This document shows positions 12,595 to 46,902 of a stretch of 64,000 bases of DNA, piece after piece. The position numbers were made by a program, and so were the translations under genes. Position 1 is the first letter of the stretch. Each line of letters begins with the position of its first letter. The notes below the pieces were generated by a model that did not search any database, was not told where the DNA came from, and saw nothing but the letters and a program-made list of their open reading frames with translations. This DNA comes from Octopus bimaculoides (taxonomy: Eukaryota). The stretch lies in NCBI RefSeq assembly GCF_001194135.2, contig NC_068984.1:98214259-98278258 (forward strand), read 5' to 3'.

Positions 12595-12936
12595 TAAATG
12601 CCCTGATGCAGCGGTACCAGGCAGTGGCTTTCATGGCTTCTCATCTTAACTGAGTAGAAATGTTATCATGTACATTGTTATATCTTGGTATAAAAGATGG
12701 GCTACAGCAAATATTCTGCTCAGTGCCACAGATTTGCATGTCAATTGTTTGACCTTAACTAATTGAGCAGATGATATGTGCATCTCTGATCACGAGCAGA
12801 AGTAGTGGGAGAGCATCACAGCCATGTGTTGAGAGGAATTCTTTGGGGTTTGGATAATTCACTTCTGGAAACATGGGTGTTTTGTTCAAAATCCTTAAAC
12901 AACCCTTATTCAGGAACCTTTTGAGCGGAATAGGTT
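12595..12936. repeat. Interspersed repeat of unassigned class
   Basis: Composition shift after an (AAT)n run; resembles a repeat recalled from octopus DNA; no diagnostic termini seen. Confidence 0.35.
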
Positions 12937-13075
12937 ACATTATTTACATTTGACAGATGTTTGTCCTCATCTTGTTCCTTAATGCAACCTTTCAGCTGAT
13001 ATACCCTCCAGCCTTCATCAGGTGTCTTGGGGAAATTTCAAACTTGGATTGTCATTCCTAAGGTATTTTTTAATG

Positions 13076-13129
<54 letters not shown>

Positions 13130-13200
13130 TCACTGCCTGGAATCGAACTCGGAATCTTGGTCTTAGTAGCCTGTGCTCTTAACCACTATGCCATATGCCC
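12937..13200 (-). mobile_element. tRNA-headed SINE with hammerhead motif, copy A
   Basis: Minus strand: GGCATATGGCATAGTGG (A box), GAGTTCGATTCC (B box), (AAT)n, body, then a hammerhead-like motif at 12981-13026. Confidence 0.85.
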
Positions 13201-13383
13201 GAAAAAATCCTAACTGGGCCCCACCTGCAAGGTCATGCACTGTTTATCTTGATATGAGATCACCATGTCATGCACATATTGTTGTGATGCATGTGCCTGG
13301 TGTATCCTTATTAGTCATGATGGGTATACTGGGCTTCGTATATTTTATTCCAGTGTCACTTTGATGGCATGCACTGCTCTCTC

Positions 13384-13433
<50 letters not shown>

Positions 13434-13667
13434 CTGCAAGTTGGCAGAATCATTCATGCTGGACAAAATGCTTAGCAACATTTCTTCTGGTTTTATGTTT
13501 TGAATACAAATTCTACTAAGATCAACTTTGCATTTCATCCTTTCAGAGTCAGTAAAATAATTACCGGTTGAGCATAGGGGTTGATGTAATCAACTAGCTC
13601 CTTCCCCACAAGATTTCAGGCCTTGTCCCTACAGTAGGAAGAATTATTCTTAGTATGAGAACTGAAA

Positions 13668-13785
13668 TTGTCCTCATCTTGTTCCTTAATGCAACCTTTC
13701 AGCTGATATACCCTCCAGCCTTCATCAGGTGTCTTGGGGAAATTTCAAACTTGGATTGTCATTCCTAAGGTATTTTTTAATGTTG

Positions 13786-13823
<38 letters not shown>
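13668..13823 (-). mobile_element. Headless copy B of the hammerhead SINE
   Basis: 13668-13787 is identical to copy A 12961-13080, then an (ATT)n run; it abuts the tail of copy C. Confidence 0.85.
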
Positions 13824-13824
<1 letters not shown>

Positions 13825-14052
13825 TACATTTGACGGATATTTGTCCTCATCTTGTTTGTTGGTAACACAACATTTCAGCTGATATACCCTCCAGCCTTCA
13901 TCAGGTATCTTGGGGAAATTTCGAACCTGGGTTTTCATTCCTAAGGTATTTTTTGATGTTATAATTATTATTATTATTCAGGTCACTGCCTGGAATCGAA
14001 CTCAGAATCTTGGGATTAGTAGCTCATGCTCTTAACCACTACGCCATATGCC
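13824..14052 (-). mobile_element. tRNA-headed SINE with hammerhead motif, copy C
   Basis: A box TGGCGTAGTGG, B box GAGTTCGATTCC, (AAT)n, body, hammerhead at 13864-13909. Confidence 0.88.
13864..13909 (-). ncRNA. Minimal type I hammerhead ribozyme motif (best-preserved copy)
   Basis: GAUAC-CUGAUGA-A-GGCUG-GAGGGUAUAU-CAGCU-GAA-AUGU-U-GUGUU: intact core, 5-bp stem II, 5-bp stem I, self-complementary helix III, GUU cleavage triplet. Confidence 0.75.
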
Positions 14053-14076
14053 TGTGGCACTCTATAATTGCCCAAG

Positions 14077-14347
14077 GGCATATGGTGTAGTGGTTAAGAG
14101 CGTGGGTTACTAATCCTAAGATTCCGAGATCGATTCCAGGCAGTGACCTAAATAATAATAATAATAATAATTTAACATCGAAAAATACCTTGGGAATGAG
14201 AACCCAGGTTCGAAATTACCCCAAGACACCCGATGAAGGCTGGAGGGTATATCAGCTGAAATGTTGTGTTAACAACAAACAAGATGAGGACAAATATCCG
14301 TCGAATGTAAATAATGTACATAATTCCTCATGTCTTAAATATAGAAC
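14077..14347 (+). mobile_element. tRNA-headed SINE with hammerhead motif, copy D (inverted relative to C)
   Basis: GGCATATGGTGTAGTGG head; hammerhead at 14225-14270 with core CCGAUGA; the tail ends in ...CTTAAATATAGAACTG. Confidence 0.88.
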
Positions 14348-19100: not shown

Positions 19101-21769
19101 TCTGTCCCAGGCAATGCCAGCTTCATAATGAACTGCTAAGGTCCTTTCTACACTTCATGTTGATTATGTATGTCAGATTTAATATTAAAAAAACCACATG
19201 CACAATACAGCTTAACACTTTCACTTCAGATGTCACAGCCTTTCTGTCACATATCAACAGTTTAGCCATCATTATTATTACTATTTCTTTATGACCCTTT
19301 ACATTTTGAGATCAAATCTCGCTGAGGTCAACTTCACCTTTCAACCCTCCTGGGTCAGTAAACTCTCAGTCTTGTGCTTCAGTTGACTAACCCATTCCCC
19401 CAAATTTCATGCCTTGTGCCTGAACTAGCAGAATCATAAGCACTTTGGACAGAATGTTTAGCAGCATTTCTTCTAGTTCTTGGTTGACTTTGCCTATCAT
19501 CATTTCAGGGTCAATAGAATATATATGATAGTTGATTATTGAGGTTGGTGTAATTGATGATCCCTCTCCCTAAAATTCCAGGCCTTGTGCTTATAGTAGG
19601 AAGTATTATTATTACTAGGGTAGTGGGTTGACTGAATCATTTGAACTTCAGATATAATGCCTTGCATATTTTCATTCTGAGTTCAAATCTCATTGAGGCT
19701 TATCACCCTTCCACATTGAATAAAATGAAGTACCTGTCAAATACTAGGGAACAATGGTATTGACTAACCCTCCCCTCAAAATTGTTGGCCTTGTGCCTAT
19801 ATTAGAAACAATTATTATGTCTTTTCAGGTACAGTAAGGGTTGTGAGGTTGTAACAGTTTTTAGTTCCAACTAATTACCTGTGTTGTGGAAATCTAATGG
19901 AAATGTTTTTGTTTTTGTAGCTACATTTTGCAAGTTGACTGCATAATTGTCTACAAGGTACTTTATGATATGGGGTAGTGACATAGTTGATTATATCAAT
20001 ATCAGTATTTGACTTGTGTTTATTTTAGTGATTCTGGAAGAAAATAAATTGACTTTCAACGATTTGAACTCCAAACACAAATGATAGTACTGAAATACCA
20101 TAAGACTTTCTCACCTGATGCTTTACAGTTTCTACTTTTCTACCAATACCACCATCATGCTACCTACAGAAACAGTACTCATAATAAGTATAGGGTAATG
20201 TAGGAGACTTTATGTAGTTGCTTGACCTACTAGAAATAGAAGCAAAATCTCTTTTTTGTGAAATTTGCTGTCATAAAAGAGGACAAATTTCATAATGTCC
20301 TAGATATACTGTGTCTGAAAAAATAGATGAAATGGTCATAGCTGGAATGTCTTTGACCATAAGACAGTTGAATCACAGCTAATATGAGGCTTAACAACAA
20401 CAACAGTCATATCAAGAACTATTTAATATAACAATATCTCTCCATAAGAAATTCCCTGTCAAAAAAGAAAAAAGAAGAAAATCTCCCCTTTTCCCCAGTA
20501 ATAAATCACTGAATCTGCTCTCCAGAAATTACACAAACCCTTAACACCTCTTAATAAAGAATGTAAGAGGCAGTAATTATCAATTATTTAAAATAGTGTC
20601 CACAAGGGCCCTATATTGAGGACATGTCTTCTGGAACATGATACTTGCTCATTCATCTTTGTAATTTAAGCAGCTATACACGTTTGTTGAAGAAAAACTA
20701 TTATAACTAATTGGGTAGCCTACTTATATCAACCTTACCATCTGTTCTTTCATAGTGAAAGAGCTCTCTTTCTTACAAAAAGGAGCACCTACCCTACTAA
20801 CTACTGTTCATCTGAGTCAATGACAGCGCTACTATGTGGTTGCTTTACTTACTTACTAGATATAGCAAGCAAATTCCCTTTGAAGTACACCCTACCATTT
20901 CAAAAAGAAAATTGTATAATGTAAGTCCTGGACACAATGTTTAATTAGTCTACAACTTATGTATGATCAGTTCAGCTGATGTCACAAATCTATTGCTTTT
21001 AGAAGCCAGTAATTCTGTTTTGAAATCTGTGCCCCCTCACCTGACAAGAAAGAACATGACTGTAACATACAGATTAATCAACTTCCATTTATCAATTTGA
21101 GGACATTTCACAAAGTCACACACATGCATAAAATGTGAGACAGAAAATGGAATTCACAAGGCCCTTTATTCAGAACCACTACAATTGTTTTGACCCATTG
21201 TGCACTGGTATTTTACAGGTGAGATGCTGTACAATATATATAAGCAGATGCTTGTGACACATGTGAGAAAAATGTTCTTGAAATTCTAAGAATTGATGTG
21301 CAATAAAACCATATGTATTGTACAAAATACAGAAGTATTCCACTCAATAGTTTGTAATAATAATATAAAGAAGGATATAATTATTTATAGTATCACACTG
21401 GTACTCATTCAATATATAATTTATTGGAACTGTTTGTATATTTGCCTTTCATTTGATCAGTTTTTTTGTTAATAATAATCAAATAATTACTTATGGCTGT
21501 TAACTATGCAATAATTCTGGGGAAGCAAACTTCTTACCACACAGCCACACCTGTCAATTATTTTCTCTTAAGTTCTACAATGATACATGGCTACCATAAC
21601 TTAAATAATTTGTTTTTAAGATAATCGACAATGTGTTCAATACAGAATTTTCGAAAAATTAAATATACTGTTTATCCAACAACATGATGATACAGTTGGT
21701 AGTTAAAATAGGAAGAATGTTGTTTGAATAGGGACACTGATGTTAGAGTAAGGAGAATGGTGTAATCAA

Positions 21770-31752: not shown

Positions 31753-34449
31753 TTGTTATATTTTAAAGATGATATAGTGTGATTTGAAGAAGATTTAGAT
31801 GTTATTTCTAGCAGATTCAATAATGGTGTAGAGGTTTCCTCATAGGGTTTTGTTATAAAATGTGCATCTTGTTAATATAATTATCACACTTAAATTATAA
31901 TATTCATAGTGGGCATACACTGTCACATTCACAACACACAAACACATGTACACAGACCAATCATTACATATGTATACCAACACACATCCTAGTTCTTACG
32001 CACGCTTACTCATACAGATCTTTCCTCACACACACTTGTGTTCATATTGATTTTCATCTACTTTCTTATTTCATATACTTTCACATACCTCCATTTACAC
32101 CATCATACAGCCTCACTCACATCTGCACGTACATGTACGTACTCACAGCCTCACACACTCCATCACTCATACGCAACATTACTCACACACACTCCATCAC
32201 TCACACACACTTCGTCACTCACACTCCATCACTCATGCACACACCATCACTCATACACACTATCATTCACACNNNNNNNNNNTAATATTCATAGTGGGCA
32301 TACACTGTCACATTCACAACACACAAACACATGTACACAGACCAATCATTACATATGTATACCAACACACATCCTAGTTCTTACGCACGCTTACTCATAC
32401 AGATCTTTCCTCACACACACTTGTGTTCATATTGATTTTCATCTACTTTCTTATTTCATATACTTTCACATACCTCCATTTACACCATCATACAGCCTCA
32501 CTCACATCTGCACGTACATGTACGTACTCACAGCCTCACACACTCCATCACTCATACGCAACATTACTCACACACACTCCATCACTCACACACACTTCGT
32601 CACTCACACTCCATCACTCATGCACACACCATCACTCATACACACTATCATTCACACACCATCACTCACTCATACCTTCTTTCACTTGCACAATCAATTA
32701 CAAACAACTTGCTCACATGCACCATCACTCTCTCTATGCATACACACATCTCACATCAATTCCCTATACATTCACACACTTAAATACACACCATTTCCCC
32801 TACAAATATATACATTACCCTACTCATCACACACACATACACATCATCACTTCATCACCACCATCATAGAGAGACATACAGATACATTTAAGTATTCATG
32901 CCTGTAAGTACAAACATGAGAATATAGGTTGACTTAAGTGTTTAAGAATTTCAAATGGTGAGATTTTAGTTGACTTCCTCAATGTTTGTAATTAGTAAGT
33001 TCTTATATAAGCTGATGCCATCTGAACCATATTTTATGGAGATTCTTTTATATTTCTCATTCCCTCTTTCTTTTTCTTCTTCATATATTTTTATAGTATA
33101 TTCATTTCACTTTTTAATTAATAAATATATGTGCTCCAGCATGACCACAGCCGCATGGCTGAAATGAGTAAAAGAATAAAAGAATTTAAGATAGAGAATA
33201 TACATGTTTATTATATGAAATAACAACTTATTAGTATTTTGTAAGCAGAGCATCATGCTAGATAATAATATATACTATAAGTATTACAATTTAAACATTT
33301 ATGCTGCAGTGTAGCGTTGTCAGTGCTCAGGTCACATTTTCGAGTGAGGAAAATTTTGACACCATTTTACAAACAATAAAGGTTTAAAGTTTTTGGGTGT
33401 TTCTGAATGGCTAACATGACTTCCATGCTGAAATCGTTTTAGTTTCAACACACAATCTCAGATCAAAACACTTGCCTGGCAAATTATATTTCTATTCAAC
33501 ATTATTGAATTGCGTACTCTTTTAATGCATATGAATACATAAAATATATATATATATATATATATAACACACGCACGCACGCAGCTGATTATGTTGGAGT
33601 GATACTACATCAAACTACCATCAAAAATGTGTGCAATGGACAAATAGTTATTGTATAACTTTCCGTATGAAATCATTTATGTCCAATGGTATTAGAAATG
33701 GAGTGGTACTGAAACAACTGTAACCATCATAATGATGTGCTAAAATTTGTTCTTCATCTTCGTAATTGTATTATATGTTATTTTTTGTTAAGACTCATAC
33801 ATTGCTTTTACCAGTGATGTACTTGGAATTTCTGTACCAGTGGACTTTCAGGAGTGTAGGTTGAGTGCTATATTGGAAATACACTGTTTTCTTCTCTATC
33901 AGAACCTACCCTACTGTATTACTTTGTGTATGTGTGTACAGGGCATTCAGGTTTAATTTGACAGTTTGTATAAAAGGGTAAGAGAACACAACATCCTATC
34001 CAAAAATTAAAATATTTTAAAAAATTAAAATATTTTAAAAAATTAAAAATCTAACAATTAGATTATTGCTGGGTGATAACAGCTTGCTCAAAGTAGCCAC
34101 TCTTAGCCTCTACTATGACCTCAAGACCACTCCAGAACTTTTGTGTTCCGCTAGCAAGAGATTCTCCTTTTCCAGAAAATTGTATACTTCATCTGCTACG
34201 AAGCCAGTTAATAGTTTCCAGGAAAATGGTAAGCAAGTAATGGCCTATAATTGCTGACTTCCCCTCTCTTTTCTTTGCCCTTCTGTATCAGCACTGTTAT
34301 TTCTTTTGTCATCCCTGTTGTTGTTCCATCTTTTATGCAGTCAGTAAAGAAATGGCTATATATAAGTGTGTATACTTGGGAGATTCTTGAGCCAGAAACC
34401 CAGGCACACCATTTGGTCCAGGAGTTTTACAGTTTTGTATTTTCTTAAT

Positions 34450-39859: not shown

Positions 39860-40831
39860 ATCCCCGGACTGGCTCATGTGCGGGCGACACATGAAATCTT
39901 TCGAGCGGGATTGTTGCCAGTGCCCCTGGACTGGCTCATGTGCAGGCGACACATGATATCTTTCGTGCGAGATCATTGCCAGTGCCCATGGACTGGCTCT
40001 TGTGCGAGTGACACATGAGGTTTTTCGAGCGAGATCGTTGGCGGTGCCCCTGGACTGGCTCATGTGCGGGCGACACATGAAATCTTTCGAGCGGGATCGT
40101 TGTCAGTGTCCCTGGACTGGCTTATGTGCGGGAGACACATGAAATCTTTCGAGCGGGATCGATGCCAGTGCCCCTNNNNNNNNNNNNNNNNNNNNNNNNN
40201 NNNNNNNNNNNNNNNNNNNNNNNNNNNNNNNNNNNNNNNNNNNNNNNNNNNNNNNNNNNNNNNNNNNNNNNNNNNNNNNNNNNNNNNNNNNNNNNNNNNN
40301 NNNNNNNNNNNNNNNNNNNNNNNNNNNNNNNNNNNNNNNNNNNNNNNNNNNNNNNNNNNNNNNNNNNNNNNNNNNNNNNNNNNNNNNNNNNNNNNATCCC
40401 CGGACTGGCTCATGTGCGGGCGACACATGAAATCTTTCGAGCGGGATTGTTGCCAGTGCCCCTGGACTGGCTCATGTGCAGGCGACACATGATATCTTTC
40501 GTGCGAGATCATTGCCAGTGCCCATGGACTGGCTCTTGTGCGAGTGACACATGAGGTTTTTCGAGCGAGATCGTTGCCGGTGCCCCTGGACTGGCTCTTG
40601 TGCGGGTGGCACATAAAAGACACCATTTCGAGCGTGGCCGTTTTCGTGCGGGTGACACGTAAAAGCACCCACTACACTCTCTGAGTGGTTGGCGTTAGGA
40701 AGGGCATCCAGCTGTAGAAACTCTGCCAAATCAGATTGGAGCCTGGTGTTGCCATCCGGTTTCACCAGTCCTCAGTCAAATCGTCCAACCCATGCTAGCA
40801 TGGAAGGTGGACGTTAAACGATGATGATGAT
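39860..40831 (+). mobile_element. 5'-truncated RTE 3' UTR copy with a 62-bp minisatellite array
   Basis: GGACTGGCTC recurs at 39866, 39928, 39990, 40052, 40114, 40402, 40464, 40526 and 40588 (period 62); followed by GGAAGGGCATCCAGC and CCAACCCATGCTAGCATGG..(ATG)n tail; 220-N gap inside. Confidence 0.85.
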
Positions 40832-46460: not shown

Positions 46461-46902
46461 AGCAGTTATAATAAGTACTAACAGTACCCATGAAAATTCC
46501 ACAGTAAATATGAAATTTTTCAGATGGTTTTAAGTTTATATAGAACCAAGCTACTACAACTACTACTACATAATAATAATAATAATAATGAAGCTACTCC
46601 TTTCTATTATAGGCTAAGGTCTGAAATCTTGTGGGCTAGTTGATTACATCAACTCATGTGCTTCACTGGTACTTATTTTACCAACCCCAAAAAATGAAGG
46701 GCAAAGTCAACTTTGGCAGAATTTGAACTCAGAATTTAAAGCTGGATGAAATGCTGTAAAGCATTTTGTCTGGCATACTAACAATTCTGCCAGCTCACCA
46801 TCTTAATAATGTGAATTATCATAAAGATTGTAATTATTTTGCTTTAAATTTAAATACTGTTTCTTTATCTTACATCTTTATGATTTTACTTGCTTATTTC
46901 AG

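Follow-up and report, generated by a model that had tools for sequence, protein, structure and literature searches.

Introduction

Short interspersed elements (SINEs) are defined by their dependence on long interspersed elements (LINEs) and, to our knowledge, tRNA-headed elements that bear a ribozyme have so far been documented mainly in schistosomes. Here we describe a candidate for such an element in Octopus bimaculoides, in a stretch of 64,000 nucleotides (nt) of assembly GCF_001194135.2 (contig NC_068984.1, forward strand positions 98,214,259 to 98,278,258), the whole of which is referred to as the window. Region 12927-14347 of the window contains four copies of one repeat, designated A, B and C (minus strand) and D (plus strand), and no further copy occurs in the remainder of the 64 kb. 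The four are probably decayed copies of a SINE-like, non-autonomous octopus retroelement that carried an ancestral minimal hammerhead ribozyme (min-HHR) and was mobilized by Penelope-type machinery.

The min-HHRs of Penelope-like elements (PLEs) have as their hallmarks a bulge after A9, a short helix I, no helix III hairpin and a palindrome at positions 15.2/16.2 (Cervera & de la Pena 2014, PMC4209133), and are also treated by Lunse et al. 2016 (cited in PMC6765202). The octopus motif shares with them the CUGANGA and GAAA boxes, a single unpaired nucleotide separating A9 from 10.1, a consensus G10.1-C11.1 pair and a helix I of 3-5 base pairs (bp). It likewise has no helix III hairpin and, in the family consensus, a CG palindrome at 15.2/16.2, so that helix III can form in a dimer only, and a genomic setting with tandem and inverted copies. 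It differs in that no PLE open reading frame (ORF) or pseudo-long-terminal repeat (pLTR) was found alongside any copy, in having a helix II of 5-6 bp where the Schistosoma families have 7-8 bp, and in that the motif stands behind a tRNA-like RNA polymerase III (Pol III) head.

That design is shared with Sm-alpha and Sj-alpha of Schistosoma, in which a tRNA-derived Pol III promoter precedes a hammerhead; these retroposons are short and non-coding, often occur in tandem and are thought to have unit copies freed by cleavage (Ferbeyre 1998 and Laha 2000, as presented in PMC2770079 and PMC6765202). They belong to another phylum, and their likeness to the octopus element is one of design. The octopus element, unlike Sm-alpha and Sj-alpha, has an internal (AAT)n run, and in vitro cleavage is reported for the Schistosoma hammerhead (PMC6765202) whereas the octopus motif is a predicted min-HHR without a helix III hairpin.

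Animal non-LTR retrozymes are a further point of comparison, with tandem low-GC units, a type I hammerhead and a proposed origin as non-autonomous PLE derivatives (PMC7229834; 10.64898/2026.07.22.740005), and they are resembled by the 129-nt arrays of ERZ21867824, a eukaryote assembly that is used below. The retrozyme units so far described are 170-400 nt long and have no tRNA head (PMC7229834; 10.64898/2026.07.22.740005). Most invertebrate retrozyme hammerheads are reported to cleave efficiently in vitro and amphibian ones to need dimers (PMC7229834). The tRNA SINEs of cephalopods and other molluscs (OR1/OR2/OK, Ceph-SINEs and MetaSINEs; PMC4824008, PMC4758252) are also short, have an A/B-box head and a conserved middle block and are dispersed in many copies, but, to judge by their descriptions only, they are set apart by LINE-derived tails and by having no reported ribozyme. 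Cephalopods are not mentioned in PMC4209133, PMC7229834, 10.64898/2026.07.22.740005, PMC2770079 or PMC6765202, and full-text literature searches for a hammerhead together with octopus, or for the element sequence, found nothing relevant. From its sequence, the octopus element would be classified as a cephalopod addition to the known ribozyme-bearing elements, Sm-alpha and the non-LTR retrozymes.

The hammerhead motif in the window

The copies and their hammerhead segments are given here with bit scores from R2, a covariance model built from ten units of the ENA assembly ERZ21867824 only and limited to the 50-nt hammerhead.

12927-13201, minus strand: copy A, with head at 13127-13201 and (AAT)n at 13079-13125
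13664-13823, minus strand: copy B, (AAT)n and body; headless, tail truncated, begins within (AAT)n
13825-14057, minus strand: copy C, with head at 13980-14053; tail continues into the (AAT)n of B
14072-14347, plus strand: copy D, full length, with 5' end CCAAGGGCATATGG, tRNA-like head, (AAT)n, linker, hammerhead unit and tail
12981-13026, minus strand: hammerhead-derived segment of A, with defects as in B
13688-13733, minus strand: hammerhead-derived segment of B, core boxes intact, GAAA-GG-UU-GCAUU, two non-standard helix I pairs; 44.8 bits
13864-13909, minus strand: hammerhead of C, GAUAC-CUGAUGA-A-GGCUG(G)-loop-(U)CAGCU-GAAA-UG-U-U|GUGUU, the only copy that fits the min-HHR descriptor; 51.2 bits
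14225-14270, plus strand: hammerhead of D, GACAC-CCGAUGA-A-GGCUG-GAGGGUAUAU-CAGCU-GAAA-UG-U-U|GUGUU, U4 replaced by C; 57.7 bits, E 1.4e-16

The 32-nt block running from CUGAUGA to GAAA, CTGATGAAGGCTGGAGGGTATATCAGCTGAAA, shows no difference among A, B and C and a single change in D, and its four occurrences at no more than one mismatch compare with 0 expected. GAAA-NN-UU is present in 4/4 copies, the CUGANGA box is CUGAUGA in A, B and C and CCGAUGA in D, and helix II (GGCUG/CAGCU) has 5-6 bp and opens with a G.U pair at 10.1/11.1. Helix I has 5 bp in C and D. In A and B, with GAAA-GG-UU-GCAUU, 3/5 helix I pairs are left and the helix III palindrome is lost, positions 15.2/16.2 being GG (no pairs) in these two copies and UG (wobble pairs only) in C and D. 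The predicted cut lies between 13869 and 13868 in C and after 14265 in D, the latter being, as first proposed, the correct H17 position.

The initial annotation had described a four-copy repeat with the shared string GAYAC-CUGAUGA-A-GGCUG-loop-CAGCU-GAA-AUGU-U-GUGUU and a 4-nt self-complementary helix III. The four copies were recovered, while the full string belongs to copy C alone, with A, B and D departing from it; the self-complementary helix is limited to wobble pairs in C and D, is missing from A and B, and has the expected CG in a related locus, L002. As a result of CpG decay, the U4 change in D and the helix I and III changes in A and B, all copies but C are poor candidates for activity. 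The window copies are probably dead relics, and copy C alone could, judging from its sequence, keep weak activity at most.

The descriptor used to assess chance resemblance, which follows PMC4209133, consists of CUGANGA, 0-1 bulged nucleotides, a helix II of at least 4 bp, GAAA, 2 nt, U, H and a helix I with at least 4/5 pairs, and it was relaxed, after the motif had been seen, to what copy C needs (G.U anywhere). Within the window the relaxed form matches copy C only, plus D if position 4 may be C, and it gave 0 matches in 300 simulated 64-kb sequences of equal dinucleotide content. The motif is not a chance match. The R2 model finds all four copies at 45-58 bits (E 1e-16 to 3e-12), and its next-best match within the window reaches 13 bits.

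Relatives and the ancestral form of the motif

The sense reading frame of the element is open from the head through the tail. A word-indexed translated search with this frame found one protein, O. bimaculoides A0A0L8FV75 (P0001), and the same type of search with two antisense frames found no match. A full HMMER scan of 1.84 billion representatives returned 48 spurious "proteins", all of which match the body and tail; these are representative translated copies at 50% clustering, and two of them are named O. bimaculoides. Many hold tandem 43-residue units such as QTPEEGWRTYRPKRCGNNNKDEDNSPKTLNDKNHQASSQKFRQ, and most read Q/R-P-K-R/H/C-C where the window has Q-L-K-C-C, corresponding to CAGCC-GAAA-CGU/CAU/UGU-UGU in the DNA. 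Dystrobrevin beta isoform X1 as annotated in O. bimaculoides (XP_052825882.1, P0016; GCA_001194135.2) also begins with a translated repeat copy, which takes up its first 33 residues and has the start of the head fused to the hammerhead module. On its sequence, this repeat is exonized or mis-annotated.

The DNA of the relatives, whose loci carry L numbers, comes from two sources. The short Logan contigs of runs SRR11869384-94 contain an octopus-type element with 77-81% identity to the window copies, and the long contigs are those of ERZ21867824, which is a eukaryote assembly and has no other repeat in common with the window. The family is real, dispersed and present in many copies, as judged by these sequences. 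A 29-nt DNA pattern had no match in metagenome contigs and a DNA pattern scan of viral contigs had none; a GC-rich bacterial contig, L001, matched by a 19-nt pattern, was rejected as a chance match.

The family alignment of 20 distinct copies has the majority consensus CUGA(U/A)GA-A-GGCUGG-AGGGUAUA-UCAGCC-GAAA-CG-UU-GUG, in which CUGANGA, GAAA and the helix II complementarity are all present and which in sequence is a canonical Penelope-type min-HHR. The most conserved positions (0.93-1.0) are GAAA (0.94), U16.1/H17 (0.93) and the bulged A; N7, the sole free position of the core, varies between U and A. The extra A after A9, pointed out in the initial annotation and typical of PLE min-HHRs (PMC4209133), is a feature of the family, being invariant where the position is present and deleted in two copies of L010. 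At U4, T is found throughout the ERZ21867824 units, whose helix I has 3 bp, and in the majority of the octopus-type copies. Standard pairing occupies 80% of the helix cells, against 16-47% when the partners are slid, and 69.5% of helix I cells overall are paired, with no pair altered on both sides. Locus L002 contains 2.7 tandem 129-nt units, each with ACAC-CUGAAGA-A-GGCCG-GAGGACAUAU-CGGCC-GAAA-CG-U-U-GUGG, and every one fits the strict descriptor with its G10.1-C11.1 pair and Watson-Crick palindrome.

The relatives also bear out the proposal that CAGCU and AUGU are CpG-decayed forms of CAGCC-GAAACGU. C11.1 is found in L003, L005, L011, L012 and L013 and in most translated copies, and positions 15.2/16.2 are CG, TG or CA among the relatives, as expected of an ancestral CpG, with CG in L002. 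Copy D is the least CpG-decayed copy of the window. The opposite polarity, with CCGAUGA and GCGUU as ancestral and CUGAUGA as the decay product, was considered and rejected, as U4 is mostly T and GUGUU is the majority form.

Architecture of the element

The initial assignment of a tRNA-like head with A and B boxes to copies A, C and D, and of an (AAT)n run after each head, agrees with pattern matches on the sequence: the three heads have an A box TGG(C/T)GTAGTGG and a B box GAG(T/A)TCGATTCC at normal spacing, and B is headless. The Rfam tRNA model did not recognize the head as a tRNA, and ARAGORN called no tRNA in the window or in related loci. Two parts of the full-length copy D are central to the comparison with relatives.

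14076-14149, plus strand: tRNA-like head of D, with A box TGGTGTAGTGG at 14083-14093 and B box GAGATCGATTCC at 14126-14137
14212-14345, plus strand: 3' module of D, homologous end to end to one 129-nt tandem hammerhead unit of L002

The homology of this module covers positions 12-150 of the L002 unit and window positions 14212-14345 (68.5% over 143 nt, E 9.5e-13), and the similarity of D to P0001 and to locus L009 extends to ~14345. Heads homologous to that of D occur in L003, L002 and L009. The composite of head and body is found again in L003, and in L002 and L009 a homologous head stands before the unit, so that the head and the hammerhead module travel together. The element is ~235-305 nt long and its tail finishes in unique sequence, with neither a poly(A) nor a simple-repeat end. 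The sense strand of D is free of TTTT up to 14354, just past the end of the element, as would be compatible with read-through by Pol III.

Copies A and B are 99% identical across 156 nt, microsatellite included, and are by this measure a local duplicate. Copies C and D lie head to head in inverted orientation, their 5' ends separated by 14 nt, and are 89-94% identical (94% over 137 nt and 89% over 99 nt), and A differs from them by ~20%. As A and B are near-identical and C and D are an inverted pair, the four copies amount to about two independent lineages. Copy B stands in tandem downstream of C on the minus strand, with the hammerhead cut sites 176 nt apart. By sequence inspection only, AGGATTTT is seen just outside both ends of copy A (12889-12897 and 13206-13216); this may be a target-site duplication, in which case the 3' end of copy A reaches ~12897.

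Insertion and mobilization

In 8/8 related loci that have enough upstream sequence (L002, L003, L004/5, L006/7, L008, L009, L010 and L013/16), the 5' end of one copy adjoins a second copy that is inverted and usually 5'-truncated; the corresponding pair in the window is C and D. Tandem units are found in addition in L002, L008 and L010, and the window has the C-B tandem. This inverted and tandem layout is unlike what LINE-driven SINE insertion leaves, and typical PLE insertions show partial tandem repeats, an inverted copy upstream and a preference for microsatellites (PMC8557442). The Penelope mobilization put forward in the initial annotation is thus supported indirectly by the recurrent inverted partners and tandem units, while an autonomous PLE was not found.

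At L008 10100-10197 the inverted and direct copies meet inside the hammerhead, in the loop and 3' strand of helix II, and the junction forms a palindrome; its sequence suggests a template switch at or close to the ribozyme in the course of integration. Scans of ORFs with Pfam gave only a mariner fragment and a LINE-like reverse transcriptase (RT). The latter is a 694-residue ORF at L008 3162-5246, 4.5 kb upstream of the hammerhead array, with an RVT_1 match (E 1.7e-31), and it is read as LINE-like because no endonuclease domain such as GIY-YIG was detected in it. No similarity was detected between the element, tail included, and this LINE, which is the only one seen.

From the motif, the homology, the family consensus and the insertion architecture, we infer the following course of transcription, cleavage and integration. 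The full element would consist of a tRNA-derived head bearing the A and B boxes for Pol III, then (AAT)n and a short linker, then a module of ~130 nt that has its homologue in the repeat unit of a tandem hammerhead element of the non-LTR retrozyme or Penelope pLTR type. The ancestral module would have been a minimal type I hammerhead, with a helix I of 3-5 bp, CUGANGA, one bulged A, a GGCUG/CAGCC helix II closed by an 8-10-nt loop, GAAA, U-U and the cut, and its CG dinucleotide would have given a 4-bp ACGU/ACGU helix III formed only between two copies. Pol III would initiate at the head and read through to the first flanking T-run, and hammerheads brought together by two units on a single transcript, or by an encounter between two transcripts, would dimerize and cut after GUU. 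The freed unit RNA would then be reverse-transcribed and integrated by a Penelope-like RT/GIY-YIG enzyme, an integration that would leave tandemly arranged units and, at the 5' end, an inverted copy. CpG decay in the window would have changed C11.1 to U and CG to UG, and D would have lost U4, A and B helix I and the palindrome. Young subfamilies would be expected to have CUGAUGA-A-GGCUG...CAGCC-GAAACGUU with a paired helix I.

A wider proposal, offered more tentatively, is that the element represents an old family of Pol III-driven SINEs, present in cephalopods and at least one other animal genome, whose partner is a PLE and not a LINE and whose dimer-activated hammerhead trims tandem transcripts to units of ~130-180 nt that are possibly circular. 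If a combination of a Pol III SINE with a PLE is the correct reading, the element would be a SINE-retrozyme hybrid, and the Sm-alpha design would be recurrent or ancient and not a flatworm oddity. Such a cephalopod family would also extend the Penelope-type non-autonomous elements to Pol III-headed forms and would bear on how octopus genomes gathered their very large SINE load. Its CpG-intact consensus would offer a tractable sequence for assays of dimer-dependent cleavage.

Evidence against a ribozyme and alternative explanations

Several results weigh against a Penelope-mobilized, Pol III-headed element with an ancestral ribozyme. The window copies are mostly defective, and C at U4 in both D and L005 means that a core-mutant lineage may have been amplified. 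Stem covariation, which had been proposed as a check, is not above a column-shuffle control. The main double change, U-A versus C-G at 10.4/11.4, sits in mirrored CpGs, so that decay on both strands alone could yield it, and one compensatory change from C-G to U-A, in L011, lies outside a CpG context. Conservation is 0.81 for CUGANGA, 0.86 for loop 2 and 0.76 for the 3' flank, and as the last two are about as conserved as CUGANGA, conservation alone does not single out a ribozyme. Folding energies are no better than those of shuffled sequences (minimum free energies and cofolding were uninformative), and in an 86-nt context the 3' strand of helix I prefers a local hairpin. The min-HHRs of PLEs themselves are reported to cleave weakly in vitro, as dimers (PMC4209133). 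Pfam searches of the ORFs of the window and of ~67 kb of related loci turned up no PLE RT/GIY-YIG ORF. Finally, the Rfam hammerhead models gave no match in the whole window at the gathering score, nor at E<=10 in segments of 1651, 91 and 96 nt. This last negative carries no weight, because the perfect minimal hammerheads of L002 are missed as well; the Rfam models expect a helix III hairpin and the PLE-type minimal subclass is not covered, so that such elements will be under-annotated.

It is unlikely that the element is an ordinary tRNA SINE mobilized by a LINE, with the conserved block a "central domain" kept for other reasons, such as RT or protein binding, and a hammerhead likeness that is functionless or never was a ribozyme. 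Such a view would account for the conservation of the entire 80-nt block, loop 2 and 3' flank included, for covariation that is not significant and for a lineage with C at U4 in two loci, and it could draw on the LINE RT in L008 and on the conserved central domains of unknown function that are common in mollusc SINEs (PMC4824008, PMC4758252). It does not account for inverted duplicated partners and tandem units, which are not products of LINE-driven insertion, for a tail that has no poly(A) or simple-repeat end and no detected similarity to the 3' end of the L008 LINE, or for the coincidence in the consensus of all min-HHR sequence requirements, with no simulated chance matches. Also distinctly improbable is a non-LTR retrozyme spreading through small circular RNAs, in which the tRNA-like head is a passenger or secondary fusion and not the promoter of the family. 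Against it, homologous heads are joined to the unit in A, C, D, L003, L004/5, L002 and L009, C, D, L003 and L004/5 have the 5' end CCRNRGGCATATGG in common, and head and body are similarly diverged between A and C/D, which indicates that they were amplified together; the 129-nt unit is, moreover, shorter than the 170-400 nt of described retrozymes (PMC7229834). On its side are the 129-nt tandem arrays in ERZ21867824, the many headless copies (B, L007, L009+ and the array units), and the reports that animal retrozymes are derived from PLEs (10.64898/2026.07.22.740005) and form circular RNAs (PMC7229834).

A chance resemblance to a hammerhead in one repeat family is disfavoured and must be regarded as highly improbable. 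The lack of an Rfam match, the fit of only 1/4 window copies to the descriptor and the relaxation of that descriptor after the motif was seen would all be in keeping with chance, but even the relaxed form had no match in 300 simulated windows, Rfam misses strict units too, and the fit to the strict descriptor improves from the window copies to the relatives and the consensus, the reverse of the expectation under chance.

Other features of the window

A different and older SINE-like repeat, preceded by (AAT)16, lies between copies A and B, and the remaining features are a possible transposase remnant and two gapped regions.

13433-13655, plus strand: older SINE-like repeat
19446-19614, plus strand, and 46635-46770, minus strand: two further copies of the older repeat, at ~75% identity
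9739-10089, plus strand: ORF with a Pfam Transposase_1 match (partial DDE domain; E 2e-5, slightly above the curated threshold)
31898-32657 and 39862-40618: an exact 385-nt duplication around a 10-N gap, and a 62-nt tandem array interrupted by a 220-N gap

The two gapped regions are probably assembly gaps within repeats. The inverted repeat of C and D gives sub-threshold matches to Rfam microRNA precursors at 14019-14110, for example mir-4477 with 41.6 bits against a gathering score of 74, and a microRNA at this position was rejected, the matches being hairpin artefacts of the inverted repeat. The transposase-like ORF looks, from its sequence, like a degraded DNA-transposon remnant.

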